Shown piece after piece: positions 1,796 through 63,130 of a stretch of 64,000 nucleotides of DNA. The translations under genes were made by a program, and so were the position numbers. The notes beneath the pieces are model-generated. The model did not search any database and was not told the origin of the DNA. It saw nothing but the letters and a program-made list of their open reading frames with translations. Within the stretch, counting starts at the first letter, position 1. Each line of letters begins with the position of its first letter. The stretch is from Monocercomonoides exilis PA203 (lineage: Eukaryota > Protista > Preaxostyla). The DNA is taken from assembly GCA_001643675.2 (NCBI GenBank), contig LSRY02000003.1:2232001-2296000 (forward strand), given 5' to 3'.

Positions 1796-4467
<2,672 letters not shown>

Positions 4468-12680: not shown

Positions 12681-13889
12681 TTATAAAGAAATAAGATAAA
12701 GGTTATTGTTATCAATGATTTTTGTATGAACCAAGCTGAAAGTGAGTGTTTGAGTTGGGACAAATGTTGAGGTGAGGAGGGTGAGAGAGGCGTCGTGGAG
12801 GAGGGAAATGAAGCCAGTGAGGGCATACTCGATGGTGGCACATGGGGTCTGTTGGGGTCTGCCACAGGCATCGACATCACTTCCACCATTTGCAACGATT
12901 TTATTCTGGGCAATGAGAGGGAGCCAGCCATTGTACACATCGCTATCAGCTGTTCCTGCATTCCAGACTCTTTGTGTTGGGGTTGTTGAGCCACAATTCT
13001 CAAATGGAGATTGGGTGATACTGCTTCCATTGAAAAACACATCATTTCCTCTGCCATTTGTTGCAGTGTTGCCATCAAAGAAACAGAAAGTGATGAATTT
13101 TATTCCATTCATCCAATCATATGTTCTTGTGCAGCACAACGCAGCACCACCATAGGAAGTTGGATTTTCGACTTTGTTGTTTATGAACTGGCACTCTTGG
13201 AGCAAGCATTGTTTTGGTTTTTGTGGTGGATGCCAATTGAATGTGACTGCACCAGCTGCATCACCGCCAGTATTTGCAATACAGGTACAATTTTTGAACA
13301 AGAATTTTGCATCAGATGGCATGTTATCGAGCACGAAATACCAACCAGTTCCATAATTGCCTGTTATTGAGCAACTTTCAACTTTGTTTTCTGAGAATGT
13401 CCAAACAGAATTAGGTTGATTGCAATACAAATAAGCAGCTCCTGCATGAGCAGCTGAACAGCTTGTGAAATTGGATTTTGCGATATCAACTTTTAACAAA
13501 TAATCACAATATAACGCTCCGCCATATTCATTTGTTGAACAATTGTTGAACGAACAAGAAGTGACTGTGAGATTTGCATTTGCACAATCGATATAAAGTG
13601 CACCTCCACGACTTGATCCACTTATTGAATTATTCCATTCGCACCACTCAAATTTATGGCTGTTCTCATCAAAAGTGGCCAATCTTCCAGGTGATTTTCT
13701 TTCAGTTTCAGTTTCAGTTCCAACATGAACCACAGCAGCATTTGATAAAGATCGTGTTTGGTGGAGGAAAGAGGCATTGAAAGCAGAGAGAGAGGTGGAT
13801 GGACTGTTGAGGGAAGGGAAGAAAGAGAGTTGAGTGGATGATAATTGAGATGTGAATTGAAAATGAATGTTAAAATCGAAAAATAACAA
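12681..13889 (-). CDS. Cys-rich GGA-motif beta-helix (Pmp/pectin-lyase-like) cassette c1, 5'/3'-truncated
   Basis: Repeated GGA(L/A)..C..SxF..C rungs. Constant blocks SLNSPSTSLSAFN..FEWCEW and KFITFCFFDGNTATNGRGNDVFF..CG.PC. The ORF begins at TTG, with no credible ATG or signal peptide. Confidence 0.75.
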   Translation of the reverse strand: MLFFDFNIHFQFTSQLSSTQLSFFPSLNSPSTSLSAFNASFLHQTRSLSNAAVVHVGTETETERKSPGRLATFDENSHKFEWCEWNNSISGSSRGGALYIDCANANLTVTSCSFNNCSTNEYGGALYCDYLLKVDIAKSNFTSCSAAHAGAAYLYCNQPNSVWTFSENKVESCSITGNYGTGWYFVLDNMPSDAKFLFKNCTCIANTGGDAAGAVTFNWHPPQKPKQCLLQECQFINNKVENPTSYGGAALCCTRTYDWMNGIKFITFCFFDGNTATNGRGNDVFFNGSSITQSPFENCGSTTPTQRVWNAGTADSDVYNGWLPLIAQNKIVANGGSDVDACGRPQQTPCATIEYALTGFISLLHDASLTLLTSTFVPTQTLTFSLVHTKIIDNNNLYLISL

Positions 13890-16242
13890 TTATTTATTTA
13901 AAATTCATTAAATTATTCAAGATGAATAATTTTAGCATTTATTTGCATATAGTGTTGAGATTTTCAATTATTTTATCACAAACAATTTTCGATGAAATTT
14001 CTATGATGGCAAATATGAATTTCTTTTTGTTTCTCTTTTTATCAAATCTTTTTAGAATTGATATCCTTTTGATTTCTGCAACAAATTGGAAAATCATTAT
14101 TTTGTTTTTCACACAATCATCAAAATACCTTTTGTATTGCTTTTTGAATTATTTTTTGTTCAATCGAAAATTTTCGGTTTGATTAGAGAATGTACTTCTT
14201 TTGTTTTGTTCTTCAAATGCCTAAATAATAATTATTATTTTGCAACCAGAAAATGAAAAATTGATTTTTAAAAACAATAATCAATTTTTTCATTTTGGTA
14301 GGAATTAAAAGCTTTGTTCTGCAATAACTTGACATTCAAAAGGAATTATTAAAAAATGCCATAAATAAATAAAAAATGTGAAATTCTGAATGTAATTTTT
14401 GGGATTGGAGAACTTCTTTGATTTTGATAATTTCTTCGTTTATTCGTTTCAATTCTGTATTATTTGAATTATTTTTTTGAAAAGCAATGAACAATGGATT
14501 TTCAAAAATGTTTGGGTTTCATTCTTTTGTCGAAACAATCCAGTGATGTTTTGATTGATATGTGAGTCTATTCAAAGATGTTTCCACAAAATCATTCTTT
14601 TCAACTGAATAAAAAAATGAAAAATAATTATTAACATCCCACTTATCATTTCATGAATATTCAACAAATATTTATCATCACCTTTTTTGAATCATCTTTT
14701 TCAATCGAATGTTATCACAGTGTCAAATATTCATTATCACTATTTTTGTTCTTGTGAGAAGCTTTTTGATGAAAAAAAATATTGTGTGTTCTTCTTCAAA
14801 TGATCCATTGTGAAGACCAAAATCTTTTTCATATTCTGAACGAGAAAAGTGATATTCTCCATTATCAAGGTTGTCTGTCCTTGACAACAACAGTTCAATA
14901 TTGGGTGATTATCTTTGAAATCATAACAATAATCAATTTTTCAGTGTTATCATTTAATTGTTTTTCAGACATTGATTCTGGAAATGCGAATGTTTGAAGT
15001 GACAAATATTTCAAACAAAGGTTGAAAAATGAACAAAGAATGGAAATACACTTCAATTTTGTTATTTTTCTTTTTTGAGAAATGAAAATTGAAATTATTA
15101 ATTTTTATAATTTTGAAAAATTGAAAGAGATAATATTAATAACATCAAATCAACTGAAGTTTATCCTCTCAATGGAAAGGACTCATTTTATATGGAACAA
15201 TGGATAATAGAAATAAATACTTTTATTTTTTTATTTTGAATTTCAAACAAATAAAACCAGACACATTTTTGAAATATTTGCTAAGCTTTTCCATTTCCTT
15301 TCTTTTCATGCAATACCAAAAAAACAAAATCATTCATTTCATTTGATTTTCTTTTTTTTGTTTGCTAGTACTTTATGGCTAATTTTTTTTTTGAAAACTT
15401 CCTTTTGTTTAATTATCAAATAAAATAAAAATCATATTTTTTAAATCAAATTTTTGTTCCAACTAATAAAACTTCACCAAAATGGAAACAGAACCTAAGA
15501 AATGTAATTATTTCCTTTTAAGAAAAGAAATGTGAGTGGGAACAGAAATTTGTTGAAAAATTGATTTTTTTTTTTTTTTTTTTTGCAAAATTAAACAAAA
15601 AAAAGTTTTAATGAAAAATTGACAATATCATCTTTTTCTCATTAAAAAATACATCATCCTTGATTGGTCAATGCGAATACAGAATCAAATAACGATAAAT
15701 ATTACAGATAAGGTGTTCTTTTGTATTTCAAAGATTATTTTGCAAAATGAAAAACAGTGGAAATATTCACGCCAAATGTCAATAATGAAATGATTTTTCA
15801 GAATAAAATAATAAAGTCATCCTTTAATTCTCTTTCACTAGTTGTATTCAAATGAAGTTGTTCTTTCACAAATGAATGAAATGAAAAAATGAAATGATTT
15901 ATAAACACCACTTTCTGCTGAGTTCTTTCCAGAAAACGAATATTTAATAACATTGGTATATTTCGATTTCTTGTTGAATTTTGTGTTTTCAGTTTTCTCA
16001 GAAATAAATAACTTTTGAAAACGCGATCTTTTCGTTTTTTTGATGAAAACGTGAAAATGAAACAAAATGAAAATTTAATTATTGATTCAAAAATTCATTT
16101 CTATAATTTTTTTATTTTCATTTTCATTGCAGAAAACACAAGGCAATTTTTTTTCATCAAAAAGAATAATTCAAAGGAAAAATGAAATAGTTTAAGCAAT
16201 TTCATTTTTTTTTTACATAAACATACACAAAAGAATTTTTAA

Positions 16243-17595
16243 AATTTCTCTTTTCACTCTTCCTATACTCTCTTTTCAATCATCTCCTCGTCCGAATCCC
16301 ATCCATTTCAACCATCTCTTCCCTCTCACTCACTCAACTCATCCGTTTCCGCCTCCTCAACAACCTCAACCACTTCTTCTTCCACAAACTCCAATACCAA
16401 TACTATCCCCTCTTTATCCATTCATTCATCCCTTTCCATCTACTCAACCATCTTCCTCCACACCCACAACCCCATCGATGGCTCCATTCTCCCCAACCTC
16501 AACAGCCCATCCACCTCTCTCTCTGCCTTCAACACCTCTTTTCTCCACCAAACTCGATCTTTATCAAATGCTGCTGTTGAGCACATTGGAAATGAAACTC
16601 ACAGAAAGAATTTAACTCGACTGTCCTTTACTGAATTGAATAGCTATCTCTTTGAGTTGTGCGAATGGAATGATTCAAATGGAGGAAGTGATTGGGGTGG
16701 AGCACTTTCTGTTGTTTGCGCAAACGCAAATCTCGCTATCACTTCTTGCTCATTCAGTAAATGTACAACCACAGGAAGTGGAGAAGGTGGAGCAATATTC
16801 TGTCAATATTTATTACAAATCAGCATCACAAAATCGAATTTCACAAATTGCCAGGCGAGACATGGAGGAGCTGTGGAAATATGGACTCCTCAATCTAATT
16901 CCGTTTGGGCATTCTCTGAAAACAGAGTGGAAAGTTGTTCAATAACATATTGGTGTGGAACTGGCTGGTATTTCTGGCTCAATGATATGCCATCAAATGC
17001 TCAATTCTTGTTCACAAACTGCAAGTGCATTGCCAATTCTGGTGGAGATTCTACTGGTTCTCTCACATTCAATAATCCTCCACAAAACAAACCAACTCAG
17101 TTTTTGGTTGATGATTGCCAATTTATAAATAATAAATTAACTGCTTCTTCGACATATGGAGGTGCTGCCATCTATTTGGATGTCACTTATTCCTGGATGA
17201 GCGGGCTAAAATTCATCACATTCTGTTTCTTCGATGGCAACACTGCCACAAATGGCAGAGGAAATGACGTGTTCTTCAGTGGAAGCAGCATCACTCAATC
17301 TCCTTTCCAGCAATGTGGATCAACAACTTTAACAAAAAGAGTGTGGAATGCAGGAACTGCAGATAGCAGTGTGTACAATGGATGGCTTCCAATCATCAAC
17401 CAGAACAAAATAGTCTCAAATGGTGGAAGCGATATCGATGCCTGTGGCAAAACACAGCAAAGCCCATGTGCCACGGTGGAGTATGCTCTCGGATGCATTG
17501 CTCCCTTCAGCGATGCCTCCCTCTCTCTTCTCGTCTCCACTTTCACTCCCACAAAGACTCTCACATTCCGTTCTCCAAATACAAAAATCAAATGA
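16243..17595 (+). CDS. Beta-helix cassette c2 (frame open from 16243 with no upstream ATG; stops at TKIK*)
   Basis: Same family. The frame is open from just after the TAA at 16240-16242 through HTHNPIDGSILPNLNSP to a TGA at the shared 3' breakpoint. Confidence 0.75.
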   Translation, partial: NFSFHSSYTLFSIISSSESHPFQPSLPSHSLNSSVSASSTTSTTSSSTNSNTNTIPSLSIHSSLSIYSTIFLHTHNPIDGSILPNLNSPSTSLSAFNTSFLHQTRSLSNAAVEHIGNETHRKNLTRLSFTELNSYLFELCEWNDSNGGSDWGGALSVVCANANLAITSCSFSKCTTTGSGEGGAIFCQYLLQISITKSNFTNCQARHGGAVEIWTPQSNSVWAFSENRVESCSITYWCGTGWYFWLNDMPSNAQFLFTNCKCIANSGGDSTGSLTFNNPPQNKPTQFLVDDCQFINNKLTASSTYGGAAIYLDVTYSWMSGLKFITFCFFDGNTATNGRGNDVFFSGSSITQSPFQQCGSTTLTKRVWNAGTADSSVYNGWLPIINQNKIVSNGGSDIDACGKTQQSPCATVEYALGCIAPFSDASLSLLVSTFTPTKTLTFRSPNTKIK

Positions 17596-21729: not shown

Positions 21730-22680
21730 TCATTTTTTCTCAGCGTTTTCAGCTGTGTTGCTGTTCCACACTCTTTCAGCTGGGGTTGTTGATCCACAAT
21801 TCTCGAATGGGGATTGAGTGATTGCATTGCCACTGAAGAACACATCGTTTCCTCTGCCATTGGTTGCAGTGTTTCCATCGAAGAAGCAGAATGTGATGAA
21901 TTTCATTCCATTCATCCAGGAATAAGTTGAATGATAATAAATAGCAGCGCCTCCATAAGAAGAAGAAGCAGTCAGATTGTTATCGATGAACTGACAATCA
22001 TTAACCAAAAATTGATTTGGTTTGTTTTGTGGAGGCCAACGAAATGTGAGTGAGCCGGTTGAATCTTTACCAGAATTTGAGATGCACTTGCATTTGGAAA
22101 ACATGAATTGACCGTTTGAAGAAAAATCACCAATATAGAAATACCATCCAGTTCCATAAATGCTTGTTATTGAACAATTTTCGACTTTGTTATCAGAAAA
22201 TGAATAAATGGAAGATGATTGTCTGCCATCAATATCAATTGCACCTCCATGAGGAGCAGAACAGTTTGAAAAATTTGATTTTGCAATATTCTCATTTTGC
22301 AAACAGTAACTGTATAACGCTCCACCACCAGTATCGCCTGTGATCGAACATTTGCTGAATGAACAGGAAGTGATTGTGAGGTTGGCATTTACACAAAAGA
22401 CTTTAAGTGCTCCTCCATGATCGTTTCCTCCATTTGAATCTTTCCATTCACACCACTCAAAACAATGGCTATTCTCATCAAAAGTGGCCAATCTTCCAGG
22501 TGATTTTCTTTCAGTTTCAGTTCCAATATGAACGATAGGTGCATTTGATGAAGATCGAGTTTGATGAAGGAAAGAGGTGTTGAAGGCAGAGAGAGAAGTG
22601 GATGGGCTGTTAAGGGAAGGGAGAATGGCACCATCGATAGGGTTGTGAGTGTGGAGGAAAATGGTTGAGTGGATGGAGAG
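21730..22680 (-). pseudogene. Beta-helix cassette c3 (short 3' class)
   Basis: Same family; ends at 'RVWNSNTAENAEKK*'. Its 5' ~500 bp is nearly identical to c7. Confidence 0.72.
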
Positions 22681-23344
22681 GAATGAGTCGGAGGATTTTG
22701 TTTGCCAGATGAACTCAACGTTGAAAAAACTGAAATTAAACGATTTCTGCGAACATCTTCATTTTTGTTTGTCTTCATTTATCTTCTCAAATCTCAATCT
22801 TCAATCAACTCATTTTGTACGTTCATTCAACACCTTCAAAATCTGCTTCAAATCATCAACAACATATAACACAACAATTTCCTCAACATCCACTTCATCT
22901 GTTTTGAATTCTCCATCAATTGCGTCAACATCAGAGAAAAGGAGAGAAAAGAAGAAACGAAGAAATTATACAGCTGAAGGGAAAAAATTACAAATGAAAA
23001 TTGGAAGAACATAGATTGGAAAATGAAAGCAGGCAAGAAAACTCACATAAAGCCAAAGAAAATTTCTTTCATCTGGAATTGCAGCTTCACAGACTTCTTC
23101 TTTTGAGGATGGAGAGGAAAACATTTTGTGGAATCTTTCTGAAGCCGCATGGCTTCTGTGGAATTTTTGCCTTTATTCAACAGAATGAGCAGATGACAGC
23201 AACTGCAGCATTTTCCATTTCTGAATTGATCTTTTCACATATTCCACTTTTTTTTTTCGTCTAATGTTAGACCAGAACGATTATTCATTCATAATTAGCA
23301 TAACTTCTTCATCTTCTAATTTCAACTCAACTTTTTAAGAAAGC

Positions 23345-24330: not shown

Positions 24331-26955
24331 GGATGAGCGGGCTGAGGTTTGTGAAGGCAGAGACTGAGGTGGGTGTAAGCAAGCAGCATCCAATGAAACC
24401 TGAAGTGTGCAGTTCTTCTCCATCCAATGGCATTCAACAGGAGAACAGAAGAGCAGCAGAAGAAGAAGCAGCAGATGGATCTTTGGGCATGACTTCAGAT
24501 GGAAGTGCAGAGGAAGTGGGAAAAGATGTGGAACAGGTGGAAATGTCGAAAAGTGGTTTAGAGATGAATGAGGAATCAGGGAGAGAGGGTAGTTCGATTG
24601 ATTTGGAAGAAAAAGAGAAGAAACAGATAATAAGGGATTGGAGAAAGACACCCACAATAAAGCATTCCCGTATCCTCAAAAGCCAAAGGAACATACAAAA
24701 GCAGTTAAAGAATATGACTGGGGATAAATAATGTGACTCATTTGGCGAGCCTGAAAAATTTCCAGGGTCATTTTGTGAGGAAGAAACGCTGCCTCTTCTA
24801 CCGCCTTTGGGAGAACAGAGGGAAGAAGGCGGGGAAGGGAAGAGAGGAGCGGCAAATAATCGTCTTCTTGGTCGGTTCAATGACATTCGGAATTGTTTGA
24901 AAAGAGGGAAGATGATGAATGAGCATCATCCTTCACCATCATCCGCTTCAAATTCATTGAATGTTGGGAGTCAGCCTCATTTTGAGCATCCATGCAGCAG
25001 TGCTTCTGTTGTGATTCAACAAGAAGAATGCAAACAAATTCCTCTATCATCATCATCTTCTTCTTCTTCTTCTTCTTCTTCTTCTTCATATTCCTCTTCA
25101 TATATGATCTCGAATTCGAGTAGTTGTGATTGTATTGCAATTGTTTCTATCTAGCAGCACACAATTTGAGAGTGTCTCCCACACGTCAATGCTGTCGAAG
25201 ATTCCCTTTTGGAGCACTTGTGAAGGCTCTGGTTGCTCATATGTGCAAATGCCTTCTCCGCCTCCACACTCTTCAGATGCACTGTTTCTTCCTCCTCTTC
25301 ATCTTCATCTTCATCTTCTTCGCTTTTATTTTCCTCAGCATTTTCATCACCATTATGGATATCGTCACTTTCTCCTCCATCAACGTCATCTTCAATCACA
25401 GTCTGTTTCATGTCTCCATTCGGATGATTATCTTCGTTTGACTCAGCCACACGCAAATGTTTGCTGTTTGATGAGCAATGTTGATTTTTTGGGAGAGTTT
25501 ATAAATGAAATAGAAAATGGATCAAAAGGAGATGAGAAAGAAAAAGGAGCAGAGAAATAGCAGAAGAACAATAGAAATATGAAGAAGGAAAAGAAGAAGA
25601 AGGTATATTCAGAGAGAAGAAGAATATTCAGAGAAGAGGAGGGAGAAGGAGAAAATTGGATTGATGATTGATGATTGGACTGTGAAAGAGGAAAGGGAGA
25701 AGCAGAAACGTGAATGGTGTTTGTATTTCTTTGATGGGTTCTATTTCTCTGAAATCTTCATCTTCTTCCTTCTTTCTTCTTCCTCGTCTGATTCATCACC
25801 AATTTCAACATCAAAACAAGCAAGATTATCTTCAATGCATTCTTTTCTTCTTCTTTCTTCTTCTTCTTCTGTTTCATGTTCTTCTTCACTGCTTTCTGCA
25901 TCCTCATCTGATTCATTCACTCAAACAATCCAATCTTCCTCTGCCTTTGGGCTATATTACACCTACTTCTCTTCTTCTTCTTCACCTTCTTCTTCGTCTT
26001 TTTCTTCGTCTTCTTCGTTTTTTTATTTTCATTCTTCTTCGTTGTGATCTTAACCTTTTTCTCCTTCGTTTCCGCCTTTTTTTCTTCCTTTTTGGTGTTC
26101 TTCAACTTCTGCATTGTTTTTGCAATATTCATCTCACTTCCTTCTCGATCGGCAATTGGCCTTCTGATGCATTCATTCATCCAAATCAGCAAAGACGCTA
26201 AATTGTACATAACATAGCTTCATTAACTTTTCTTCTTCTCATCGTCCATTCACCACATACGCCATCATTTCATGTTTCATTCACAATTCTCGTGATGAAA
26301 AAAAGGCGATTTGAGCAACTTCATTCATTTCATTCAAATCAGCTTCTTCTTCAACGCCTTCTTCGTTGAAAATCAAGAAGTGCCATTTCCATTTCATTCA
26401 ACTCCCGTCAAATTCAGGGCCAAGCCTCATCTTTCATTCTTACTCAGAAAGACAAAAGGATTATTCATTCTTTCACAGAATAACAGCTAATGTTATTTTA
26501 CAAAGGAAATTGCACAATGTTTAACCAAGAAAAGCTGATCATCAGGCATTCAACAGAAAACAGAGATTGAATCTGACTTTTTTGATTTTGAAGATCAAGC
26601 ATCTGAAGTGAAAAGAAAAAGTATTCAAGCTATTTTTGTTTGAAATGGATGTGTTCCAAAATAGCCTTCTGCAGATTACACAGATACGAAACTGGAGCAA
26701 ATTGTTGAAAATGAAAAGGAAAGGAAAATTTAGAAGAGCATGTTGATATGCCTGAAGAAATCCTATTTGAAGAGATGAAAGCGATGAATCTTTTTTCTTG
26801 AGCTCAATTCATATTTGATGAAAAGGAAAAATTTGATGAAGAAATGACGAAGAAATAGTTTTATATGAGCGGAGATTAAAGATAGATTGAAAAAAATAAA
26901 CTTCTGGTGAAAAGAAGATGATAGGTGTAGGATATTTCTCTGATATGGAAAATGG

Positions 26956-29266: not shown

Positions 29267-29716
29267 CAGTCAAAACCGGATATAATCACGTCGAATATAA
29301 TCACATTCGTTTATTGTCACATTTCTCGATGCGCCGACATTTTTTGCTTGCTTTTCATTCATTTTTCATCGCATATAATCACAGAGCTAAATATATATAA
29401 TTACATTTCGTTTCATTATGGGTGGATTTTTCATTGAAAAATTTACTATTTGATCAAAAATCTCATTTTTTTGATTTCACGAAATAATGTTTAAATAAGT
29501 CTAAATAACATAATAAAACATAAAAAATTGTTATTTCGATTGAAAAATGTGTGGTTGTGTAGGATTAAAAAAAATGGAAAAATTTACCCAAAATAAATTA
29601 TTTCAAAAATTATTTTTCATTTTCTTCTGTGTAAAGCATCATCGTGTATAATCACAATCGGATATAGTCACAAAAAGTTGTGCAAAAACCGATGTGATTA
29701 TATCTGGTTTCGACTG
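29267..29716. mobile_element. ~450-bp non-autonomous Tc1/mariner-pogo-type MITE
   Basis: TIRs CAGTCAAAACCGGATATAATCAC ... GTGATTATATCTGGTTTCGACTG, each flanked by TA. The paralogous empty site at ~15300-15325 (revcomp ...tttggTAttgcatg) has a single TA. Confidence 0.88.
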
Positions 29717-49701: not shown

Positions 49702-51030
49702 CTAAGCAAATAGTAGCATATATGCCATTTGAAAATGGGATGAAAGCTCATGAATTTGGCAATGATACGGAAAATATTCAAAAATTAAAAGAAATAATGA
49801 TAGAATATTAACTGTTTTATATGATGAAAATAGAAGGAACAATAAAGAAATCAGACAAATTTCATCATTTCCAGTGATTATGGTGTCAGCCACACTGAAG
49901 GTGAGTGTTAGAGTTGAAACAAATATTGAGGTGAGAAGGGAGAGGGAGGCATCGCTGAAGGGAGCAACGCACCCGAGAGCATACTCCACTGTGGCACATG
50001 GGCTTTGCTGTGTTTTGCCACAGGCATCGACATCAGTTCCACCATTTGCAACGATTTTGTTCTGGTTGATGATTGGAAGCCAGCCATTGTACACATCATT
50101 ATCAGCTTGTCCATTATTCCACACTCTTTTTGCTGGGGTTGTTGATCCGCATTGCTGGAATGGAGATTGGGTAATGCTGCTGCCATTGAAAAACACATCA
50201 TTCCCTCTGCCATTTGTTGCTGTATTTCCTTCGAAGAAGCAGAATGTGATGAATTTTACTCCACTCATCCAGGAATATGTGTCTCTGAAAAACATTGCAG
50301 CACCTCCCCATGAAGTTGAATTTGATGTCAATTTGTTGTTATTAAACTGACAATCATTAACCAAAAATTGACTCGGTTTGTTGCTTGGAGGCCAATTAAA
50401 TGTTAAAGAACCAGCAGCATCTCCACCAGAGTTTGAAATGCACTCGCATTTGGTGAACAGGAATTGACCGTTTGATGAAAAATCACCAATAAAAAAATAC
50501 CATCCAGTTCCATAAATGCTAGTTATTGAACAATTTTCAACTCTGTTGTCTGAAAATGAATAAACGGAAGATGATTGCCGACCATCAATGCAAATTGCTC
50601 CTCCATTTTGTGCTGAACAGTTTGTGAAATTGGATTTAGCAATATTCACATTTGATAAATATATGCTGTATAACGCTCCACCATTTGTTCCATTTGTGGA
50701 ACAATTGAAAAATGAGCACGAAGTGATTGTGAGATTTGCGTTTGTGCAGTTGACATAAAGTGCACCTCCCCAGGAACTTCCACCATTTGAATCATTCCAT
50801 TCGCACCATTCAAATTTATGGCTGTTCTCATCAAAATCATACAACCTTCCAGGCGTTTTTCTTTCAGTTTTAGTTCCAACATGAACCACAGCAACATTGG
50901 CTGAAGATCGAGTTTGATGGAGGAAAGAAGCGTTGAAGGCAGATAGTGAAGTGAATGGGCTATTGAAGTTGGGGATGATGGCACCATCGATAGGGTTGTG
51001 AGTGTGTTTGAAGATGGTTGAGTGGATGGA
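49702..51030 (-). CDS. Beta-helix cassette c8
   Basis: Same family. The ORF call is 49702-50889, with homology extending upstream through the HNPIDG block. Confidence 0.72.
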   Translation of the reverse strand, partial: SIHSTIFKHTHNPIDGAIIPNFNSPFTSLSAFNASFLHQTRSSANVAVVHVGTKTERKTPGRLYDFDENSHKFEWCEWNDSNGGSSWGGALYVNCTNANLTITSCSFFNCSTNGTNGGALYSIYLSNVNIAKSNFTNCSAQNGGAICIDGRQSSSVYSFSDNRVENCSITSIYGTGWYFFIGDFSSNGQFLFTKCECISNSGGDAAGSLTFNWPPSNKPSQFLVNDCQFNNNKLTSNSTSWGGAAMFFRDTYSWMSGVKFITFCFFEGNTATNGRGNDVFFNGSSITQSPFQQCGSTTPAKRVWNNGQADNDVYNGWLPIINQNKIVANGGTDVDACGKTQQSPCATVEYALGCVAPFSDASLSLLTSIFVSTLTLTFSVADTIITGNDEICLISLLFLLFSSYKTVNILSLFLLIFEYFPYHCQIHELSSHFQMAYMLLFA

Positions 51031-51189
51031 GAGAGATGAGTTGAAGGGTTTTGTTTGTCAGATGAATGCGGAAACAAAGTTGAAAAACCAGAAAAAATTG
51101 GAAAATCAAATATCTCGGTATTTGTTTATTTATTTATCTTCATCATTCTCAGCTTCAATCAACTCATCAATTAATTCATTATCATCACC

Positions 51190-51268: not shown

Positions 51269-51758
51269 GCTTCATCTATTTTGAATTTCTTCACATTTGA
51301 TATCTGCATCAGAGATCATGAACGAAATGAAGAAAAAGATGAACTTTTGCAACTGAAGGAAATATTCGGAAATAAGAAAGAGAGGAAGAAGAATGAAAGA
51401 AGATGAAAAAGATGAGAAAGAGAAAGAAAAAATAAGATCCTGTTTTTTGGATAATTGATAAATGGAAAAGAGATTGAGAGGGTTGAAGAGATTTTTGTGT
51501 TAAAGAGAGAAGATGTTTCGAAGAGGAGATTCGAGTTGAATGTTGAATTTGGAAGGAAAGTATTTGGATAAACGGATGGTAATTTTGAGAAGCGGTAAAA
51601 CAAACAGGGGCAAATGACGAGATTCAGGAAATAAACTATCAAATTTGAGAGAAAAGAAAGAATGCAAGGAGAGGAGAAAATAGAGAAAGCAAAAATAAGA
51701 GACGGAAGTTAGAAAGACATTTCATTGGAAAAATTAGAGAAGGAAAGATAAGCTACGG

Positions 51759-52694
51759 TCAGCCATTATATTCAGCATTATCAGCTGTTCCTTGATTCCA
51801 CACTCTTTTTGATGCTGTTGTTGAGCCACATTGCTGGAATGGAGATTGGATGATGCTGCTGCCATTGAAAAACACATCGTTTCCTCTTCCATTTGTGGCA
51901 GTGTTGCCATCGAAGAAACAAAATGTGATGAATTTTATTTCATTCATCCAAGTGAAGGTTGCATCCAAATAGATGGCAGCGCCTCCTCGTGTTGATGAAG
52001 TTGATGTCAATTCATTATTTACAAATTGGCAGTCATTTACCAAAAATTGACTCGGTTTGTTTTGTGGAGGCCAATTAAATGTTAGAGAGCCAGCAGCATC
52101 ACCACCTGAGTTTGAAATGCACTTGCATTTAGAAAACAGGAATTGGCAAGTCGAAGTCATATTATTGAGCCAGAAATACCAACCAGTTCCACACCAGTAT
52201 GTTATCTTACAACTTTCCACTCTATTTTCTGAGAACGTCCAAACAGAATTCGTTTGAGGATACCTGATGCAATTTGCTCCTCCATGGCCAGCCGAGCATC
52301 CCGTGAAATTTGATTTTGCCATATTTATTTTCAACAAGTAATGACAGTATAATGCCCCTCCACCACTATCACTTCCTGGACAATTGCAATTGAAAAACGA
52401 ACAAGAAGTGATTTCGAGATTGGCATTTGTGCACTCAACATGAAGTGCACCTCCATTATCATTCCCACTATTTGAATTTTCCCATTCGCACCACTCAAAT
52501 TTATGGCTGTTCTCATCAAATGAAGTCAATCTTCCAGGTTTCGCTCTTTGAGTTTCATTTCCAATGTGTTCAACAGGGGCATTTGATGAAGATCGTGTTT
52601 GGTGAAGGAAAGATGTGTTGAAGGCAGAGAGAGAAGTAGATGTGCTGTTGAGGTTGGGGAGGATGGCGCCATCAATTGGGTTTTTGGTGAGCAA
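51759..52694 (-). pseudogene. Beta-helix cassette c9 (left palindrome arm; W->TGA stop)
   Basis: Same family. Ends 'ADNAEYNG*' where other copies continue NGWLP. Confidence 0.75.
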
Positions 52695-53755
52695 AAGAAT
52701 AAATCAATAGAAATAGAATAGAATTATATTTGTAAAGTGTGCATTCACGATGATGATTATGAAACGGATGATAGATTGATCATTATTGGAATCTAAATTT
52801 TATAATTGCTTTTTTTCTGGGTTTTCTTTGGAATATTATTTTTGAACGAGTGAGCGATGCAGCAGGAGAAGAAGAAAAAGATTTTCATTAGAGCATGAAT
52901 TATTTTGTTGAAAGAATGAGTGTTGTTTGAAATTGGTATAACGCGTTGACTGAGATTATGATATTTGTTGTGAGCATTTTCATTCTGTTTGCCTTCTGAA
53001 CGATTGTGCTTTCTGTGGTAAAGTCGAAAAAAGATTGATAAAAAAATATCTGTTCTTTGTTTTTCTTTTTCTTTGTATTTGTTGCACAATAAAATAATTT
53101 GAAATGAGAATTTTTGTGCATGAAATGGTGAGCTTGTGGTTTGCCATTGTCGAATTTTGAAAGTGTTGTTAATTGTTGTTGTTGTCGAAACGGAGTTATT
53201 TGTTTGTTCAGATTTTTTCAAAAATGTTATTTTTCTTGGAGCGTGAATAATTGTGGATATCTTTGTGAATATTCAATCCTCACAACAATTATTGATATTT
53301 GTTTTCCATTAATAATAATTCATATGTTGTTTCACAAAAAAACACATCAAAAAATTCTTGCAAAGTGATTGATTTACATGAAAAAAATTTTTTTTGAAAA
53401 AAATGATTATTGGCAAACCCATTTTGCCATTGGTGATTGTGATTTCACTTCTTCTTCAATATTCATATTAAAGACAGTAAAATACTTCTTTACATTGAAA
53501 AATATTTTCCAACAACAAAAAACACCACAACAAACTGAAATATTGATTGTTTATGAATTCGTTTATTGAATGCGCTTTTTTTCAAATAACTATTTATTTT
53601 TTCTCATTTTTGAATTCTATTTTGTCTGTCAAACATTTCGGTTTGAAAATTCATTTTGAATATTTGAAAATGAACCCTTGAAGTTGATAACTTCTTTTCA
53701 ATAGACCATTTCCTTTCTTTCGTCTCAAACATTGGCTTTTTTTGCAATTACTATA

Positions 53756-54204
53756 CAGTCTAAACCGGATATAATCACTTCGAATATAATTATATTCGTA
53801 TATTGTCACATTTTTCGATGCACAGACATTTTTGGCCTATTTTTCATTCATTTTCCATCGCATGTAATCACTGGGCTGAAAATATATAATCACAATTTTT
53901 ATTATTGTGGGTGATTTTTTCATTGAAAAATCGATTTTTTGATCAATAATTTAAATTTTTCACTTTTTCAAAAATGTGCTCAAATACGTCTAAATTATGT
54001 GTATTTATGATCAAAAATGTTCAAGCAAGTGAAAAAAGTGTATTTGTGCAGAATTTCCAAAAATAAAAAAATCGACCCAAAATTAATTATTTATGAAATT
54101 AATTTATATTTTTTCTATGTAAAGCATCATCGTGTATAATCACAATCGGATATAGCCACAAAAAGTCGTGCAAAAACCGATGTGATTATATCCTGTTTAG
54201 ACTG
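53756..54204. mobile_element. MITE copy 2 (same family as 29267-29716)
   Basis: TA-CAGTCTAAACCGGATATAATCAC ... GTGATTATATCCTGTTTAGACTG-TA. Confidence 0.88.
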
Positions 54205-54904
54205 TATATCGGACATTTTATTATGGATTGATAAATAAATGAAACAAAAATTTGCAATAATCCACATCCCCCAAGAAATATGTTATTTCAAAAATAACAT
54301 CAAAAATTATTGAAATTAGAAAATTTATGATTCAAATTGGAATAATTATCTTTATCATCCGTTTATTATTCATAATTTATAAAAGAAATTATTCAAATTT
54401 GATAAACTAATCTTTCAAAATCATATGGATGATTATTTTTGAAATCATATATCTTCTGTTAAAATTGTAGGATCGAAAAAATTCTTATTTATTTGTTGGA
54501 AATGAACAACGAATAATAACAAAGTTAAACAAATACATCACTGTTTTTCTTTTAAATAAGACATCTAATTTTCAAGCAATAAAACACCCTTCAATATTTG
54601 AATGATTAATATTTAGCTAATAACGAATACACATTAAAAACTCAGACTACGAAAAAAGTTATGATTTCAAAAATAATCATCCATATGATTTTGAAAGATT
54701 AGTTTATCAAATTTGAATAATTTCTTTTATAAATTATGAATAATAAACGGATGATAAAGATAATTATTCCAATTTGAATCATAAATTTTCTAATTTCAAT
54801 AATTTTTGATGTTATTTTTGAAATAACATATTTCTTGGGGGATGTGGATTATTGCAAATTTTTGTTTCATTTATTTATCAATCCATAATAAAATGTCCGA
54901 TATA

Positions 54905-55353
54905 CAGTCTAAACAGGATATAATCACATCGGTTTTTGCACGACTTTTTGTGGCTATATCCGATTGTGATTATACACGATGATGCTTTACATAGAAAAAA
55001 TATAAATTAATTTCATAAATAATTAATTTTGGGTCGATTTTTTTATTTTTGGAAATTCTGCACAAATACACTTTTTTCACTTGCTTGAACATTTTTGATC
55101 ATAAATACACATAATTTAGACGTATTTGAGCACATTTTTGAAAAAGTGAAAAATTTAAATTATTGATCAAAAAATCGATTTTTCAATGAAAAAATCACCC
55201 ACAATAATAAAAATTGTGATTATATATTTTCAGCCCAGTGATTACATGCGATGGAAAATGAATGAAAAATAGGCCAAAAATGTCTGTGCATCGAAAAATG
55301 TGACAATATACGAATATAATTATATTCGAAGTGATTATATCCGGTTTAGACTG
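54905..55353. mobile_element. MITE copy 3 (palindromic mirror of copy 2)
   Basis: Reverse complement of 53756-54204 with the same TA flanks. Confidence 0.88.
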
Positions 55354-56406
55354 TATAGTAATTGCAAAAAAAGCCAATGTTTGAGACGAAAGAAAGGAAA
55401 TGGTCTATTGAAAAGAAGTTATCAACTTCAAGGGTTCATTTTCAAATATTCAAAATGAATTTTCAAACCGAAATGTTTGACAGACAAAATAGAATTCAAA
55501 AATGAGAAAAAATAAATAGTTATTTGAAAAAAAGCGCATTCAATAAACGAATTCATAAACAATCAATATTTCAGTTTGTTGTGGTGTTTTTGTTGTTGGA
55601 AAATATTTTTCAATGTAAAGAAGTATTTTACTGTCTTTAATATGAATATTGAAGAAGAAGTGAAATCACAATCACCAATGGCAAAATGGGTTTGCCAATA
55701 ATCATTTTTTCAAAAAAATTTTTTCATGTAAATCAATCACTTTGCAAGAATTTTTGATGTGTTTTTTGTGAAACAACATATGAATTATTATTAATGGAAA
55801 ACAAATATCAATAATTGTTGTGAGGATTGAATATTCACAAAGATATCCACAATTATTCACGCTCCAAGAAAAATAACATTTTTGAAAAAATCTGAACAAA
55901 CAAATAACTCCGTTTCGACAACAACAACAATTAACAACACTTTCAAAATTCGACAATGGCAAACCACAAGCTCACCATTTCATGCACAAAAATTCTCATT
56001 TCAAATTATTTTATTGTGCAACAAATACAAAGAAAAAGAAAAACAAAGAACAGATATTTTTTATCAATCTTTTTCGACTTTACCACAGAAAGCACAATCG
56101 TTCAGAAGGCAAACAGAATGAAAATGCTCACAACAAATATCATAATCTCAGTCAACGCGTTATACCAATTTCAAACAACACTCATTCTTTCAACAAAATA
56201 ATTCATGCTCTAATGAAAATCTTTTTCTTCTTCTCCTGCTGCATCGCTCACTCGTTCAAAAATAATATTCCAAAGAAAACCCAGAAAAAAAGCAATTATA
56301 AAATTTAGATTCCAATAATGATCAATCTATCATCCGTTTCATAATCATCATCGTGAATGCACACTTTACAAATATAATTCTATTCTATTTCTATTGATTT
56401 ATTCTT

Positions 56407-57330
56407 TTGCTCACCAAAAACCCAATTGATGGCGCCATCCTCCCCAACCTCAACAGCACATCTACTTCTCTCTCTGCCTTCAACACATCTTTCCTTCACC
56501 AAACACGATCTTCATCAAATGCCCCTGTTGAACACATTGGAAATGAAACTCAAAGAGCGAAACCTGGAAGATTGACTTCATTTGATGAGAACAGCCATAA
56601 ATTTGAGTGGTGCGAATGGGAAAATTCAAGCAGTGGAAGCAGTCGTGGAGGTGCACTTTATGTCAACTGCAGCAATGCAAATCTCACAATCACTTCTTGT
56701 TCATTCAGCAATTGTTCAACAAATGAATATGGCGGAGCGTTATTTTGCAAATATTTATTAAACGTCAACATCGCAAAATCCAATTTCACAAGTTGCTCAG
56801 CTGCACATGCCGGAGCTGCTTATGTTGGCTGGAACCAGCCCAGTTCTGTTTGGACAATTCAACAAAACAGAGTCGAAAGATGCTCGATTACAGACTGGCG
56901 GAGCATAGGCTGGGAAATCGTTCTCGATAACATGACATCAGACAGTCAATTCCTATTCAAAAATTGTGTTTGCGCTGCAAATACTGGCGGTGATGCGACT
57001 GGTGCAATCTCATTCAATTGGCTTCCACCTGAAAAGCCAAAACAGTGCTTGCTCCAAGAGTGCCAGTTCTTAAATAATAAACTGAATGCTTCATCGATTT
57101 ATGGTGGCGCTGGCATTCATTGCACCAGGACATATGATTGGATGAATGAAATTAGATTCATCACATTCTGCTTCTTCGATGGAAACACAGCTGCAAATGG
57201 AAGAGGGAATGATGTGTTCTTCAATGGCAGCAGCATCATCCAATCTCCATTTGAGAATTGTGGCTCAACAACAGCATCAAAAAGAGTGTGGAATCAAGGA
57301 ACAGCTGATAATGCTGAATATAATGGCTGA
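56407..57330 (+). pseudogene. Beta-helix cassette c10 (right palindrome arm; same W->TGA stop as c9)
   Basis: Identical to c9 up to FEWCEWENS, then a different core, then the same 3' end 'TASKRVWNQGTADNAEYNG*'. Confidence 0.75.
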
Positions 57331-60300
57331 CCGTAGCTTATCTTTCCTTCTCTAATTTTTCCAATGAAAAGGCTTTTCCACTTCCTTCTCTCTTCCAAGT
57401 ATTTTTGCTTTCTCTATTTTCTCCTCTCCTTGCATTCTTTCTTTTCTCTCAAATTTGATAGTCTTTTTTCTGAATCTTGTCATTTGCCCCTGTTTGCTAT
57501 TTCGCTTCTCAAAATTACCCTCCGTTTATCCAAATTCTTTTCTTCCCAAATTCAACATTCAACTCGAATCTCCTCTTCGAAACATCTTCTCTCTTAAACC
57601 CAAAAATATCTTCAATCCTCTCATTCTCTTTTCCATCAAGCATGAATCCGAGATCAAGAATTTCTTTCTCTTTCTTTTTCTTATTTTTATTTGTTATTTT
57701 TTCCTTCATTAATATATTTCCTTGTTTCCTTTTCATTTCTCTCTTAATCTCTGATGCAGATATCAAATCATGAAGAAATTCAAAATAGATGAAGTATATG
57801 TTGAGGAAATTGTTGTGTTATATGTTGTTGATATATTTGAAGAAGAAGAAGAAGAAGAAGATTGTAATGATGATGAATGGATTGAATGAGACGATTAATT
57901 GTTGACAATTGAGAAGATGGGAGTCAATAAATATCAACGTAGAAATTCATTGAAATTCTCTTCTTCTGTTTCTTTTTCTTCTGCAGAGGAGAAACATCTG
58001 AATCCTTTTTCACTTTCAGCTCAATCTCTTTCTCTCTCTCCAACAAAAAATAGGAAAGATTGAGCAATTCCTTTTTCATTCCATGCCTTCTTCTTTCACT
58101 TCCCTTATTTCACAAAAAATCTTCTTTCCTCAAAAATAATTATTTGTCAAAGCCCAACGCCAGGCATCTTCGAAATATCTTGAATTTCATCTGTCCGTCT
58201 TTATTTTTCCTTTCCTGCTTTTCTTCTTTTCCTTCAAAGCCATCTAATTCCTCATTCTTTCAGCATCCAAAATAAAACAAAATTATAATCACTTCAAAAA
58301 AAATAACAATATCAAACCTTCTAAACATATTTTTAAGCCAATGCCTATATTTTATTCAGTTGGTATCTGTTTTCCTCCAATTCAATTTTATAATTCCTTC
58401 CGTTTTCGAGTATTTCATCATCTGATTCTCCTACCATCCTTTCCGTCAGTTGTTTCTCCATCAAATGCATCGATTTCTTGCTCTTCTGAAAAATGTGAAA
58501 TTCATGTATTCTGCTCAAATTCCACCCTCATCATTGAAAAATATCCTGTTTTTCGTCTGAAAATATCATCTCCAATTCCCTTCCCAATCCCTTCATCCTG
58601 GCAACTTTCCATATGAATTTGCTGGCTCAACTCGATGGTCACCCTGCACAACGAAATATCCCGCTTTCATTCATTTTCATTCATTTCCGCCTCCTGCCCT
58701 GAAAGAAACACAAAAACATTCAACAGATAAATATTCATATAAAGAAAAATAAATAAATACCAAACCGCTCTTCGACTGTATTTTGCCAGAATGCATATCT
58801 CGACAGCCATCATCATTCAAAAAGCAATCTCTTCATTTCAGTCTCAGTGTGATCAAAATGCAGCACTGAATGCATCTCTACAAAATACATCGTGTATCTC
58901 ACTGGAGGGTCTTCTCAGCCCGTACACATTGTGTTGCCTGTCAGGATGTGTTTTTTTTGTTTTTCTCATGATCCTCTCCTTTAATAATATTCTCAACCAC
59001 CCAAAAAAGTATTTGATGTTTATCTCATCAACACCAGGCACATGAGGGATATGGGGCAGAGAAGAGATGGAAGAGGATTATTTGTGGGAGAGGGTGGGAG
59101 TTGGGTGTTTTTTTGAATGTTAATATTTCAAGAGGGGCTTTTGAATGGAAGAAATTTGGAGACAAAAAGGTGGGGAAGAGCAGATGGAGATTTATAGAAG
59201 AAAATGTAGAAAACATATAGAGAAGTGACTGGGGATGATGAAAGAGGACTGATTGTTGATGGGAGAAATGGATTTTGAAGAGAAAGAAAAGAGGGCAAAG
59301 GCGGGAAAGAAGAAGGAAAATGAGAAATGCTCAAATGGAAGAGGGGTATTTTTTTATGAGAGGAGAAGATTTTATGGAAGAAAATGGGAAAGATGAAGAA
59401 AAGGAGGGGATTGATATTTTTCAGAGAATTTTGTGAGATGAATGGAAGAGGGGAATGGAAAGGAAAGGAAATTAAGAAATATTTTCATTTTTTGTTTCTC
59501 AGTGAAGTGCAGAACAATTTCAAAAAGGCAGAAACGAACTGAGGATGTCATCTTTCATCAATTAATTTTCTTCGGCCTTCAACAAATATTTCGATAACGA
59601 TTGTTTGCTCTTTGTCAAATCAACTTATTGAATTCGATATTTGGCCCAATCAACGACTTCACCCAAATTAATCTCAACGTCTTCTTTAGGAATGTCAATT
59701 GACTGATTGCGCATTTCCCTATTACCACATATATTCACATTTTTTCGACTTGAACTTCATCTTCGTGGTCATCGTGGAATCATCATCTTCTTCTCCATCT
59801 TCTTCTGATAATACTCCTTCATTCAATCGACCATTTTCCTCATTTCTCTATTTGCAAACACAAAATTCGCCTACTCACAATTCACCTGTTTATTCATCGA
59901 CAAGCACGCCTGTTATGAATCGCTAACCAAAAACACACAAAATCTTCTTCAGTCAAATTTTGCTTCTTCTTCACTTTCTTCTTCTTTGACTTCATTCTTC
60001 CTCTTCTTCATCTCTTTCATCTCCTTCTTCTTCTTTGACTTCATTCTTCCTCATTGATTCGAACATTGAAACAGCATCTATCTTCATTTCAACAATTGTG
60101 ACCCTCCTTTTCTTCTTCAACGCCTTCTTCGATGAACGAATTAAAAATATTCCTATTTCTATTTCATTCAACTCCCGTTAAATCCAGGGCCGAGCATCAT
60201 CTTTCATTCTTTCTCAGAAAGATAAAAGGCATATTTGTTGTTTTACGGAATATCTTTAAAAATTATTTTACAAATGAAATGGTTCAATGTCAAATCAAGA

Positions 60301-60663
60301 ATAGCCGATCATCGGGCACACAATCCATGAAGGTTGCCTCTGCATAATTTATTTTGAGATTGAAAGAATTACAGGAAGAAGAAGGAACAAGATTGGAAAA
60401 GATTTCTTTGAACAAACAGTTGCAAGGATGGTTTTCGAGAGATTTCGCAAGGCCACATGCCTTCAAAAAGTCTCAGAAGATGAAACGATGAGGGAAACTT
60501 ATTTATTTGAAAAGGCATATTTAACAGAAAATTCAATGAAAGAAGAGAATAAATGCCCGACAAGCAATGTTGATTTCATCAAATGCACATGTGAGATGTT
60601 TTCTTCAATTTTGTGTGCCATCTCCCCAACTTTCTTCGACTTTGCCTTCATTTGCACATAAAT

Positions 60664-63130
60664 TCACCGACAAGCCAGCTGATGAAATGATTTCTGCCTT
60701 ATGATCTGCACCTTCTTCAAAAAACCCATCGCGTTTTGTGTCCTCTTGTAGGGCATCTTTGATGTCCAACAATACATTGCTTTGATGCCAAGTATGTTTT
60801 CCATATGTTCATCATAAGCTGAATGCCCGTTGAGAAATATAAACAAATCGACATTCCAATCACCAAGTGCTTCTGTTCTGTCATGTCCAGCAACCGAGTT
60901 GTCTTTCTGAGCGATGCTTGTCATGAAGGCGAACAAGGGTTCCTTCACAGAAGCGACAAATGATTCACACACAAAATACACATCTCTTCCGACACTGGCC
61001 TTGTTGGCTGAAAACACGATATTGGTGATGGAAAAGGTTGTGGATGACACTTCTGAATCATCGTTGTACTCGATCATGAGAGCGCCGCCTCTTCCTCCAG
61101 AACTTGTATCCTCGCTCACAGAGCAGGTGGAGAAGGCTGTGTCACTCACTGAAAAGGAGTTGGCAGTGGAAGATGAGGCGAATGAGATGCACCCGCCATT
61201 GGTGGCTGTCTGTTGGCTGAACTGTTCTGAGTTGATACTGGTGATGGTGCAGTTGGCGAGGGAGAGGGAGAGGGCAGGGGAGGTGGCAGAGGAGAGAACA
61301 CAGCTGGTGGGGGTGGCAGTGGAGGTGATGTGGGTGATGTTGGAGGAGTTGAGGGTGAGGGGAGCGGTGAGGGAGGTGAGGTGGAAGATGCTTTGACTGT
61401 TGAGGGCGAGACTGGTGATTGCTGTGTGGTTGAGGGCGATGGAGCCAGCAGTGAGGAAGAAGAGGGGTGTTTTTATTGTTATGGAGGTTGTTCCGGTGAT
61501 GGTGGTTGTGTTGAGGTTGAGGGACGGGGAGTTATCGGAGAGGTGGAAGAGGATGGGGGTGATTTGATTTGAGGAGTTGTGGGAGATGGCGAGGGCAGAG
61601 ACTGTGAGGGAGCCCTGGGTCTGTTGGAAGAGGGCAGACGAGGCAGATGGATCTGGTGAAGAAGATGCAGATGAAAATGATGAAAATGATGAATTTGATG
61701 ATGATGACTGTGATGACTGAGAATATGAGATTGGTGGTTGGGGAATGCCACTGGAGGCGATGGTGGTGGCATCTGTTCCGTTTCCAGTGATTTTTGTATT
61801 TGGAGCACGAAATGTGAGAGTCTTTGTGGGAGTGAAAGTGGAGACGAGAAGGGAGAGGGAGGCATCGCTGAAGGGAGCAACGCATCCGAGAGCATACTCC
61901 ACTGTGGCACATGGGCGTTGCTGTGTTTTGCCACAAGCATCGACATCACTTCCACCATTTGCTACGATTTTGTTCTGGTTGATGATTGGAAGCCAGCTGT
62001 TGTATTCAGCGTTTTCAGCTTGTCCATTATTATACACTCTTTTTGTTGGAGTTGTTGAACCACAATTCTCGAATGGAGATTGAGTAATGGAATTACCACT
62101 GAAAAACACATCGTTTCCTCTGCCATTTGTTGCGGTGTTGCCATCAAAGAAACAGAAAGTGATGAATTTTCCTCCATTCATCCAGTTATATGTTGCATAA
62201 CAGTAAATGGCAGCGCCTCCATAATTAGTAGAGGCAGTCAATTCGTTGTTAATAAATTGACAATCATTGATCAAAAATTGACTAGGTTTGTTACTTGGAG
62301 GATAACGAAATGTTAAAGAGCCAGCAGAATCACCGCCAGAATTTGCGATGCATTTGCAGTTTGAAAACAGGAATTGACCATTTGATGGCATGTCATTAAG
62401 CAAGAAGTACCAGCCAGTTCCACACCAACTTGTTATTGAACAACTTACCACTCTATTTTCTGAAAATGTCCAAACAGAACTGGATTGTGGCCAGCCGACA
62501 TGAGCAGCTCCTCCATGAGCAGCTGAGCAACCCGTGAAGTTTGATTTTGAAATGTCAATTTTCAACAAATATACACAGTATAATGCTCCACTATGATCAT
62601 CAGATGAGCAATTGTCGAATGAACAAAAAGTGATTGTGAGATTTGCATTCGTGCAGTTGACATGAAGTGCACCTCCACGACTGCTTCCACTGCTTGAATT
62701 TTCCCATTCGCACCATTCAAATTTGTGGCTGTTCTCATCAAAATCAAACAATCTTCCAAGTGATTTTCTTTGAGATTCATTTCCCACGTGCACGACAGCA
62801 GCATTTGTCGAAGAGCGTGTTTGGTGAAGAAAAGAGGCATTGAAGGCAGAGAGAGAAGTGGATGGGTTGTTGAGGTTGGGGAGGATGACTCCATCGATGG
62901 AGTTGTGAGTGTGTTTGAAGAGGGATGAGTGGATGGAGAGGGATGAGTGAAGGGAGAAGGAGGGGATAGTATTGGTATTGGAGTTTGTGGAAGAAGAAGT
63001 GGTTGAGGTTGTTGAGGAGGCAGAAACGGATGAGGTAAGTGAGTGAGAGGGAAGAGATTGTTGAAATGGATGGGATTCGGACGAGGAGATGATTGAAAAG
63101 AGAGTATAGGAAGAGTGAAAAGAGAAATTT
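60664..63130 (-). CDS. Beta-helix cassette c11, longest copy (709-aa ORF call plus upstream homology)
   Basis: Only copy continuing past TKITGN, into ~370 aa of Ser/Thr-rich beta-helix rungs (NGGCISF, RGGALMI, FSANKASVGRDVYF). No TM segment before the stop, and no ATG start. Confidence 0.78.

Follow-up and report, generated by a model that had tools for sequence, protein, structure and literature searches.

A 64,000-nucleotide stretch of the genome of Monocercomonoides exilis PA203 (assembly GCA_001643675.2, contig LSRY02000003.1, positions 2,232,001 to 2,296,000) contains 11 partial copies of a giant beta-helix receptor gene. We refer to this whole stretch as the window and to the contig as C25; coordinates are window positions unless they are prefixed with C25 (the window is C25:2232001-2296000). 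We propose that the copies belong to a recombining birth-and-death array of short-form and truncated paralogs of a single module of the receptor. The array is probably a de facto pool of variants, and a by-product, rather than a dedicated and programmed machine for one-way switching. Its units have spread by segmental, and often inverted, duplication along with flanking sequences that are not part of the family, and homology-dependent exchange (gene conversion and crossing-over between repeats) has replaced all or part of their cores. Near-identical tracts of the same kind are also shared by array copies and full-length genes in other parts of the genome. The original prediction, which was made from the letters of the window alone, had described 11 beta-helix cassettes with constant flanks and variable cores, and had proposed that they form a reservoir that is recombined into expressed receptor genes.

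Eleven copies of one receptor module

Both a six-frame motif scan and tblastn with full-length family members identified exactly 11 copies (c1 to c11), on both strands and at the predicted places. The LNSPSTSLSAFN...FEWCEW block (the 5' or N block) and the FITFCFFDGNTATNGRGNDVFF...CGSTT block (the 3' or C block) are present in all 11. In a self-BLAST of the window, the copies are 73-90% identical over about 900-1000 nucleotides (nt), and the duplicated blocks of 2-3 kb include non-family flanks. When full-length proteins were compared to the window with tblastn, they matched only across amino acids (aa) 268-734 in ten copies and across aa 283-1160 in c11. (Amino acid numbers are those of the full-length family protein, unless a residue of the model is stated.) No other part of the ~3000-aa protein, and nothing above aa 1160, was found anywhere in the window. 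The copies are truncated, as had been predicted: each is one module (about aa 340-734) of the full-length protein, and c11 is longer.

There are two classes of 3' junction. Class A lies after aa 734 (...TKI.GN) and is found in c1, c2, c4, c5, c7, and c8. This junction falls on the same nucleotide in 15 sampled copies and the DNA downstream is homologous, so it arose just once. Class B, after about aa 661 (...AENAE), is found in c3, c6, c9, and c10. The 5' ends of the copies are at four or five points within a serine-rich linker.

Among the class A copies, c1 (12708-13826, minus strand; aa 362-734) has no upstream in-frame ATG, and its leader-like upstream open reading frame (ORF) is interrupted by a stop codon. 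c2 (16204-17589, plus strand; aa 268-731) contains the module and the upstream serine-rich linker, has a stop 2 codons before the junction, and also lacks an upstream ATG. c4 (26956-28413, minus strand) is a 485-aa ORF with an ATG and has its module (aa 334-734) at 27007-28209, and c5 (31097-32401, plus strand) is a 434-aa ORF with an ATG and has its module (aa 367-734) at 31199-32311. c7 (41726-42832, plus strand; aa 367-734) has flanks of the c1/c5 type, and c8 (49867-51045, minus strand; aa 341-734) has a decayed leader with a stop codon and no ATG. Among the class B copies, c3 (21739-22686, minus strand; aa 345-658) has no ATG and follows a decayed leader like that of the annotated gene MONOS_11907. 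c6 (35753-36892, minus strand; 379 aa) has a leader, the module (aa 355-669, at 35849-36796), and a hydrophobic C-terminal tail. c9 (51762-52688, minus strand) and c10 (56413-57327, plus strand) both contain aa 351-661, with two stops directly 3' of the module in c9. The longest copy, c11 (60475-63126, minus strand; aa 283-1160), has an ORF at 60664-62793 and a frameshifted tail that it has in common with MONOS_11557.

The prediction of a beta-helix held up for these copies. A model that AlphaFold built from 23 family sequences has a predicted local distance difference test score of 70-91 over model residues 48-300 and consists entirely of short beta strands. All 50 of its top structural matches from VIA-align are right-handed parallel beta-helix proteins (Z = 14-18). 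A Foldseek search of PDB with the same model gave nothing significant, and the ORFs of c4, c5, and c11 did not match any Pfam family, including PF02415 and PF13229. The first 47 residues, which correspond to the 5' block, are predicted to be disordered and belong to the serine-rich linker. The module is modeled as a right-handed parallel beta-helix that would be membrane-distal and bounded by serine-rich linkers. Chlamydial Pmp-type and other right-handed beta-helix repeat proteins (PF02415, PF13229) have the same fold, and the module contains GGA[LI] and FxxN-like motifs as they do. In contrast to those proteins, the ORFs of the window have no Pfam match, and their context is a eukaryotic type-I receptor rather than a bacterial autotransporter.

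The parent family and the C25 array

A protein search with the proteins of the window matched only "uncharacterized" proteins from M. exilis. The full-length family genes are intronless ORFs of 2954-3084 aa. (Adjacent genome pieces, such as L001 and L005, were joined to read uninterrupted ORFs.) Each encodes a signal peptide, a beta-helix ectodomain of about 2550 aa, one transmembrane segment, and a tail of about 400 aa, the end of which matches PF07714 (C-lobe only, E = 4e-10). The original prediction had called for a search of the genome for full-length members with a signal peptide and a transmembrane segment, and these are they. The window copies are 65-79% identical to aa 268-734 of these kinase-tailed ORFs.

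A "protein tyrosine kinase/TKL" family (TKL is short for tyrosine kinase-like) is reported as the largest family in M. exilis and overlaps with unclassified repeats, according to Karnkowska 2019 (PMC6759080) and Treitli 2021 (PMC8767320). The full-length parents of the copies are evidently this family: they carry a kinase-like tail, whereas the window copies have no transmembrane segment or kinase-like domain of their own. In the parts consulted, the two papers mention neither the ectodomain modules nor the short-form array on C25, nor any gene conversion. More distant relatives were identified by using HMMER to search 1.8 billion representative sequences. These include other M. exilis subfamilies (30-38% identity), a protein from Streblomastix strix, and bacterial "outer membrane repeat" proteins. 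Pfam identified PF02415 or PF13229 among other distant relatives from this search.

The C-block motif occurs 444 times in the genome and was absent from the controls, as compared to 196 occurrences of a motif from just downstream of the module. Copies in short ORFs are concentrated at C25:1.48-2.51 Mb. Arbitrary 10-kb samples of this array contain 0-3 copies each (about 2 per 10 kb), always of the same module, and from the density of copies (24 in 124 kb) the array has roughly 200 of them. C25 ends in TTAGGG repeats, the array reaches to within about 40 kb of the telomere, and C25 matches a 2.54-Mb complete chromosome of Treitli et al. (PMC8767320). Past 1.32 Mb, C25 contains none of the 150 best kinase-tail matches in the genome. 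Many contigs carry intact ORFs of 2500-3100 aa, and dozens to hundreds of full-length genes are dispersed around the genome; in an unranked genomic sample, 13 of 37 copies looked full-length. We did not find a single dedicated expression site: the full-length genes are many and lie on many chromosomes. Many of the array copies at C25:1.49-2.51 Mb are in inverted pairs with identical match scores, such as 1547436/1553231 and 2050464/2065139.

Segmental exchange among copies

The clearest case of exchange is a palindrome at 51462-57636 (centered near 54555), which holds c9 in its left arm and c10 in its right arm. The arms are 100% identical for about 2 kb, from the center to about 52480 on one side and 56625 on the other (aa ~427 of the module). 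Beyond this point they are just 55-75% identical for about 550 nt, through the core, and are 85-100% identical again from the C block onwards. So, the core of c10 is unlike that of c9. No perfect donor for either core was found: the best genomic matches are 87% identical for c9 and 94% for c10 (at C25:2429566), and the best full-length matches to these cores are 81-82% identical (81% for c10).

Conversely, c3 and c7 share about 500 nt at 98-100% identity (22115-22614 on the minus strand in c3, aa 367-536; 41737-42235 in c7). Outside of this tract they are 74% identical within the module and their flanks are unrelated. More broadly, the non-coding flanks of paired copies have identities of 0.8-0.99 and their cores 0.61-0.78. 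For c1/c4, c1/c7, and c2/c11, the flanks or tails are at 0.8-0.94 and the cores at 0.64-0.78, which is the reverse of the pattern for simple duplicates. Two head-to-head pairs, (c1,c2) at 12434-17590 and (c5,c4) at 26196-32593, are related by inverted segmental duplication, and this accounts for a flipped spacer with no call for an invertible switch. Palindromic duplication seems to be the usual way in which the C25 array grows. In a tree of the cores, the junction classes are scattered among the full-length genes.

We also ran a permutation test that is similar to GENECONV, with the global 95% run length as the threshold. This identified 28 pairs: 4 between full-length copies, 11 between full-length and truncated copies, and 13 between truncated copies. 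The longest runs spanned 199, 165, and 150 polymorphic sites, as compared to a maximum of 66 in the permuted data. Together with the identity profiles, this bears out the idea that the cores are mosaics formed by segmental exchange.

To compare the rates for different kinds of pairs, we counted tracts of at least 100 nt at 98% identity or above among 113 copies. Such tracts were found for 1.75% of array/array pairs, 0.90% of full-length/array pairs, and 0.30% of full-length/full-length pairs. Pairs with an array member were enriched 3.7-fold (p = 4.5e-4); the rate for full-length/array pairs was 3 times that for full-length pairs, which is not a significant difference (p = 0.17). In all, 13 tracts join full-length and array copies, including c1 with L016 and c5 with L070, so the predicted sharing between the array and full-length genes is real. 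Besides the two blocks, the endpoints of tracts fall at several conserved motifs in the rungs of the helix (near aa 430, 500-515, 525-545, and 600). For one pair, a full-length gene (L011) and an array copy (L041), the 201-nt identical tract is closest to an array relative of the latter (L038). This one case suggests transfer from the array into a full-length gene; ten other cases were uninformative about direction.

Constraint and open frames

The contrast between constant blocks and a variable core is genuine, but it is only moderate, and full-length genes show it too. Identity to the consensus is about 0.9 in both blocks and 0.58-0.90 in the core (mean ~0.76), and the profile is alike whether it is taken from full-length genes, from the window, or from truncated copies elsewhere. 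Over the whole protein, no other long stretch varies as much as the core of the module, although the excess is modest. The ratio of nonsynonymous to synonymous divergence (dN/dS) is about 0.25 in the truncated and full-length sets alike. In the C block, the synonymous divergence (dS) is 0.67-1.05, which is the same as in the core, with a dN/dS of 0.10-0.13 and codon homozygosity of 0.58-0.64. Because its synonymous divergence equals that of the core, the C block is conserved as protein and not as a DNA signal for recombination. This weighs against the original prediction. For the N block, dS is about half of that in the core.

We noticed two other segments, at aa 270-295 and aa 770-800, that bracket the module and are conserved even at synonymous sites (codon homozygosity of about 0.9, versus 0.5-0.7 inside). 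They are seen in full-length and long copies; within the window, they are present only in c11 (at ~61.5-61.6 kb) and upstream in c2 and c11. A 32-nt string that encodes QGSLTVSALAI is nearly invariant in about 196 genomic copies, even though the search pattern allowed all synonymous codons. The bracketing segments may be a DNA-level element or a zone that is homogenized by conversion.

All 11 cores in the window are open. Yet in 8 of the 11 copies the first in-frame ATG, if any, comes no earlier than codon +110 to +231 of the module; the exceptions are c4, c5, and c6. In simulations, neutral divergence of 5-10% left just 10-1% of cores free of stops, and the array copies have diverged from each other to a dS of 0.5-1.0. 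We compared intactness in unranked samples, as a list that was ranked by score had biased it upward (to ~90%). In these samples, 23 of 24 array copies had an intact core, as compared to 5 of 24 dispersed copies on other chromosomes that were not full-length (p = 1e-7). These results make it very improbable that the array is an inert graveyard of pseudogenes, that is, debris of segmental duplication at a repeat-rich chromosome end with frames that are open through youth alone: the copies are truncated and have lost leaders, a few array copies do contain stops, and dispersed fragments elsewhere are clearly decaying, but the array copies are old relative to each other and are nearly all intact, their dN/dS is far from the ~1 expected, and two of them are transcribed, as described below.

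Transcription, leaders, and tails

The four RNA runs that we used contain 25-30% of the sequence words of a 6-kb test stretch, and contigs assembled from them were mapped at 97% identity or above. c4 is covered by locus-specific contigs from ~28558 to ~26928, which include pieces with no mismatches within the variable core and which span the class A truncation junction at 27007. For c5, the contigs extend from 30822 to 32499 or beyond. Depth was zero in all four runs over the 2 kb that separate c4 from c5. At their mapped ends, the transcripts match their own ORFs to within ~150-275 nt. For silent donors, the original prediction had itself named transcription of cassettes from their own loci as the contrary result, and this is what we found for c4 and c5, the two copies examined. 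The RNA contigs for c4 and c5 contained no splice joints. Upstream of c1, c5, and c7 we found no leader exons or splice sites; the sequence there is AT-rich and non-coding, apart from a short ORF that in c1 and c7 is disrupted by a stop.

The leader of c6 (MKRGRLLSCIPFLLLL...) resembles a signal peptide (MKRGRLLSCIPFLLLLYPFL...SQC) and has about 10-15 relatives in the genome. At the other end of the ORF is a hydrophobic tail, FHLSFLLSLSSPLVSFLLFSLFS. Judging by these features, c6 is apparently a complete short-form gene. MONOS_11907 has a different hydrophobic leader, and decayed homologs of it precede c3 and c8. The leader-like ORF of the c5 type is interrupted by a stop in c1 and c7. In all, six copies (c1, c7, c3, c8, c9, and c10) have leaders that are either broken or without an ATG. 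A hydrophobic tail is found at the end of both junction classes, and in c3, c9, and c10 there are stops between it and the module. The leader and tail of c6, together with the decayed leaders elsewhere, point to an origin of the copies as short genes. The idea that they are purely donor cassettes was not sustained, given that c6 appears self-contained and that others carry decayed leaders.

How the array might have formed

We suggest that the founder of each junction class was a small gene for a secreted or anchored protein, with a new hydrophobic leader, one module, and a hydrophobic tail. c6 would still be such a gene, and c5 and c4 possibly are as well. Most copies would later have lost the leader or the start codon. 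Their cores could nevertheless stay open and protein-like, as frequent exchange would couple them to copies that are under selection, both short forms and full-length genes. Indeed, frequent exchange of this kind is the best explanation for copies with decayed leaders or tails and intact cores. It also implies that the array works as a pool of variants, whether or not it was selected for that role, and module variants could move from it into functional genes. In this limited sense the predicted reservoir survives: full-length genes have tracts in common with the array, and copies without starts have open cores. Counting against it as originally proposed are the transcripts from c4 and c5, the absence of any single expression site, and a C block whose conservation is at the protein level.

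Several points weigh against a recombining array of this kind. First, c4, c9, and c10 have no full-length relative that is closer than ~80-82% over the core, so their intact frames are not explained by simple, recent refreshing from any one full-length gene that exists today. Second, open cores in copies without starts would also be expected of a selected donor archive. Third, the RNA evidence consists of short assembled contigs from one study and covers only c4 and c5, and the signal peptides of c6 and MONOS_11907 were called by eye only. Fourth, our sample of 113 copies represents only about a quarter of a family that has more than 440. Finally, the assembly was made with Oxford Nanopore reads and Pilon (PMC8767320), so assembly or polishing could in principle have affected the 100%-identical arms of the palindrome.

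An alternative that we consider unlikely is that most array copies are independently functional short genes, which would encode secreted or membrane-anchored proteins with a single module (such as soluble adhesins or decoys), and that recombination among them is incidental. This would account for the leader and tail of c6, for annotated short models such as MONOS_11907 and MONOS_18537, for transcripts of c4 and c5 that fit their ORFs, for the low dN/dS, and for the hydrophobic tails of both classes. It is harder to reconcile with the 8 copies that have no early ATG, with the broken or ATG-less leaders of six copies and the stops before the tails of three, and with the lack of any upstream exon or splice joint where we looked (upstream of c1, c5, and c7, and in the RNA contigs).

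Another alternative is a dedicated donor archive: a store of modules, maintained by selection, that are copied mainly one way into expressed full-length receptors and vary the exposed face of the beta-helix. We doubt this. Truncated and mostly start-less copies with open cores, at one dominant locus near a telomere, are what an archive would look like, and within the ectodomain the module varies more than any other long stretch. The threefold higher rate of tracts for full-length/array pairs would also fit, although it is not significant, as would the apparent transfer into L011. However, direction rests on that single case, and tracts are found in all classes of pairs. Furthermore, c4 and c5 are transcribed, full-length genes are many and dispersed instead of in a single expression site, the C block lacks conservation as DNA, and leaders and hydrophobic tails indicate an ordinary origin as short genes. 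Similarly, it seems improbable that the distal megabase of C25 is a selected library, in which about 200 open-frame, ligand-facing modules feed conversion into the dispersed full-length receptors.

Comparison with known systems

In Trypanosoma brucei, VSG genes are expressed from few telomeric expression sites and in a monoallelic fashion; the arrays are largely silent and most array copies are frame-broken. The subtelomeric VSG arrays resemble the C25 array in their large size and their position near a chromosome end, and in consisting of partial or defective copies of a surface gene, with mosaics formed by conversion and with complete genes elsewhere. In M. exilis, by contrast, there are many dispersed full-length genes, 23 of 24 array cores are open, both of the copies that were tested are transcribed, and the array contains just one of the receptor's several modules.

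In the vlsE/vls system of Borrelia and the msp2/p44 system of Anaplasma, silent donors supply a single expression site, transfer is strictly one-way, and the flanks are conserved as DNA. As in M. exilis, the donor-like copies have open frames without starts, a variable core lies between conserved parts, and short segments are exchanged. Unlike those systems, the 3' block of the M. exilis array is not conserved at synonymous sites.

The var genes of Plasmodium falciparum are complete genes that form in-frame mosaics by ectopic recombination near chromosome ends. In these and other subtelomeric contingency families, as in M. exilis, exposed domains are in-frame mosaics, endpoints lie in locally conserved motifs, and a dedicated class of donors is not required. 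The difference is that the partners in M. exilis are mostly single-module short forms or relics that are packed into one array of about 1 Mb.

Other features of the window

At the left edge of the window (940-4420, minus strand), there is a cyclin-like ORF and a kinesin with a SAM domain (Pfam E-values down to 2e-65). Ordinary genes at this edge show that the array is interspersed with normal genes. At 37914-39449 (minus strand), inside the array, there is an intact gene for a 511-aa type-I membrane protein with a signal peptide, a CG..PC..Y motif, a transmembrane segment, and a short tail. Its CG..PC..Y motif resembles the inter-module motif of the giant family, of which it is a distant small relative. 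A GC-rich block at 44600-46100 (about 45% GC, versus 25-38% around it) has overlapping ORFs of 150-170 aa on both strands, with no match in Pfam. The 3' flanks of class A copies (11895-12708, 26196-27007, 32311-32600, and their equivalents) contain decayed coding-like sequence on the opposite strand, such as YTPIEKAMIAYEFFYDMENGENKK.

Implications

What is new here is that the largest gene family of M. exilis, so far described only as "tyrosine kinase-like", evidently consists of giant beta-helix receptors, that one of the modules has given rise to a separate, megabase-scale array close to a telomere, and that recombination within the family is most active in the C25 array. For annotators, this means that the ~28.9 Mb of "unclassified repeats" in the M. 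exilis genome may partly be gene arrays of this kind. If the array were in fact a selected library, then it would be a system for diversifying a repertoire of receptor kinases in a commensal protist that lacks mitochondria, and would be comparable to the VSG and vls archives, but with many acceptor genes and with donors that are transcribed. In either case, the array is a natural experiment on how gene conversion may keep copies without starts open, and it provides a concrete and testable case of how a free-living or commensal protist might diversify its repertoire of surface receptors.

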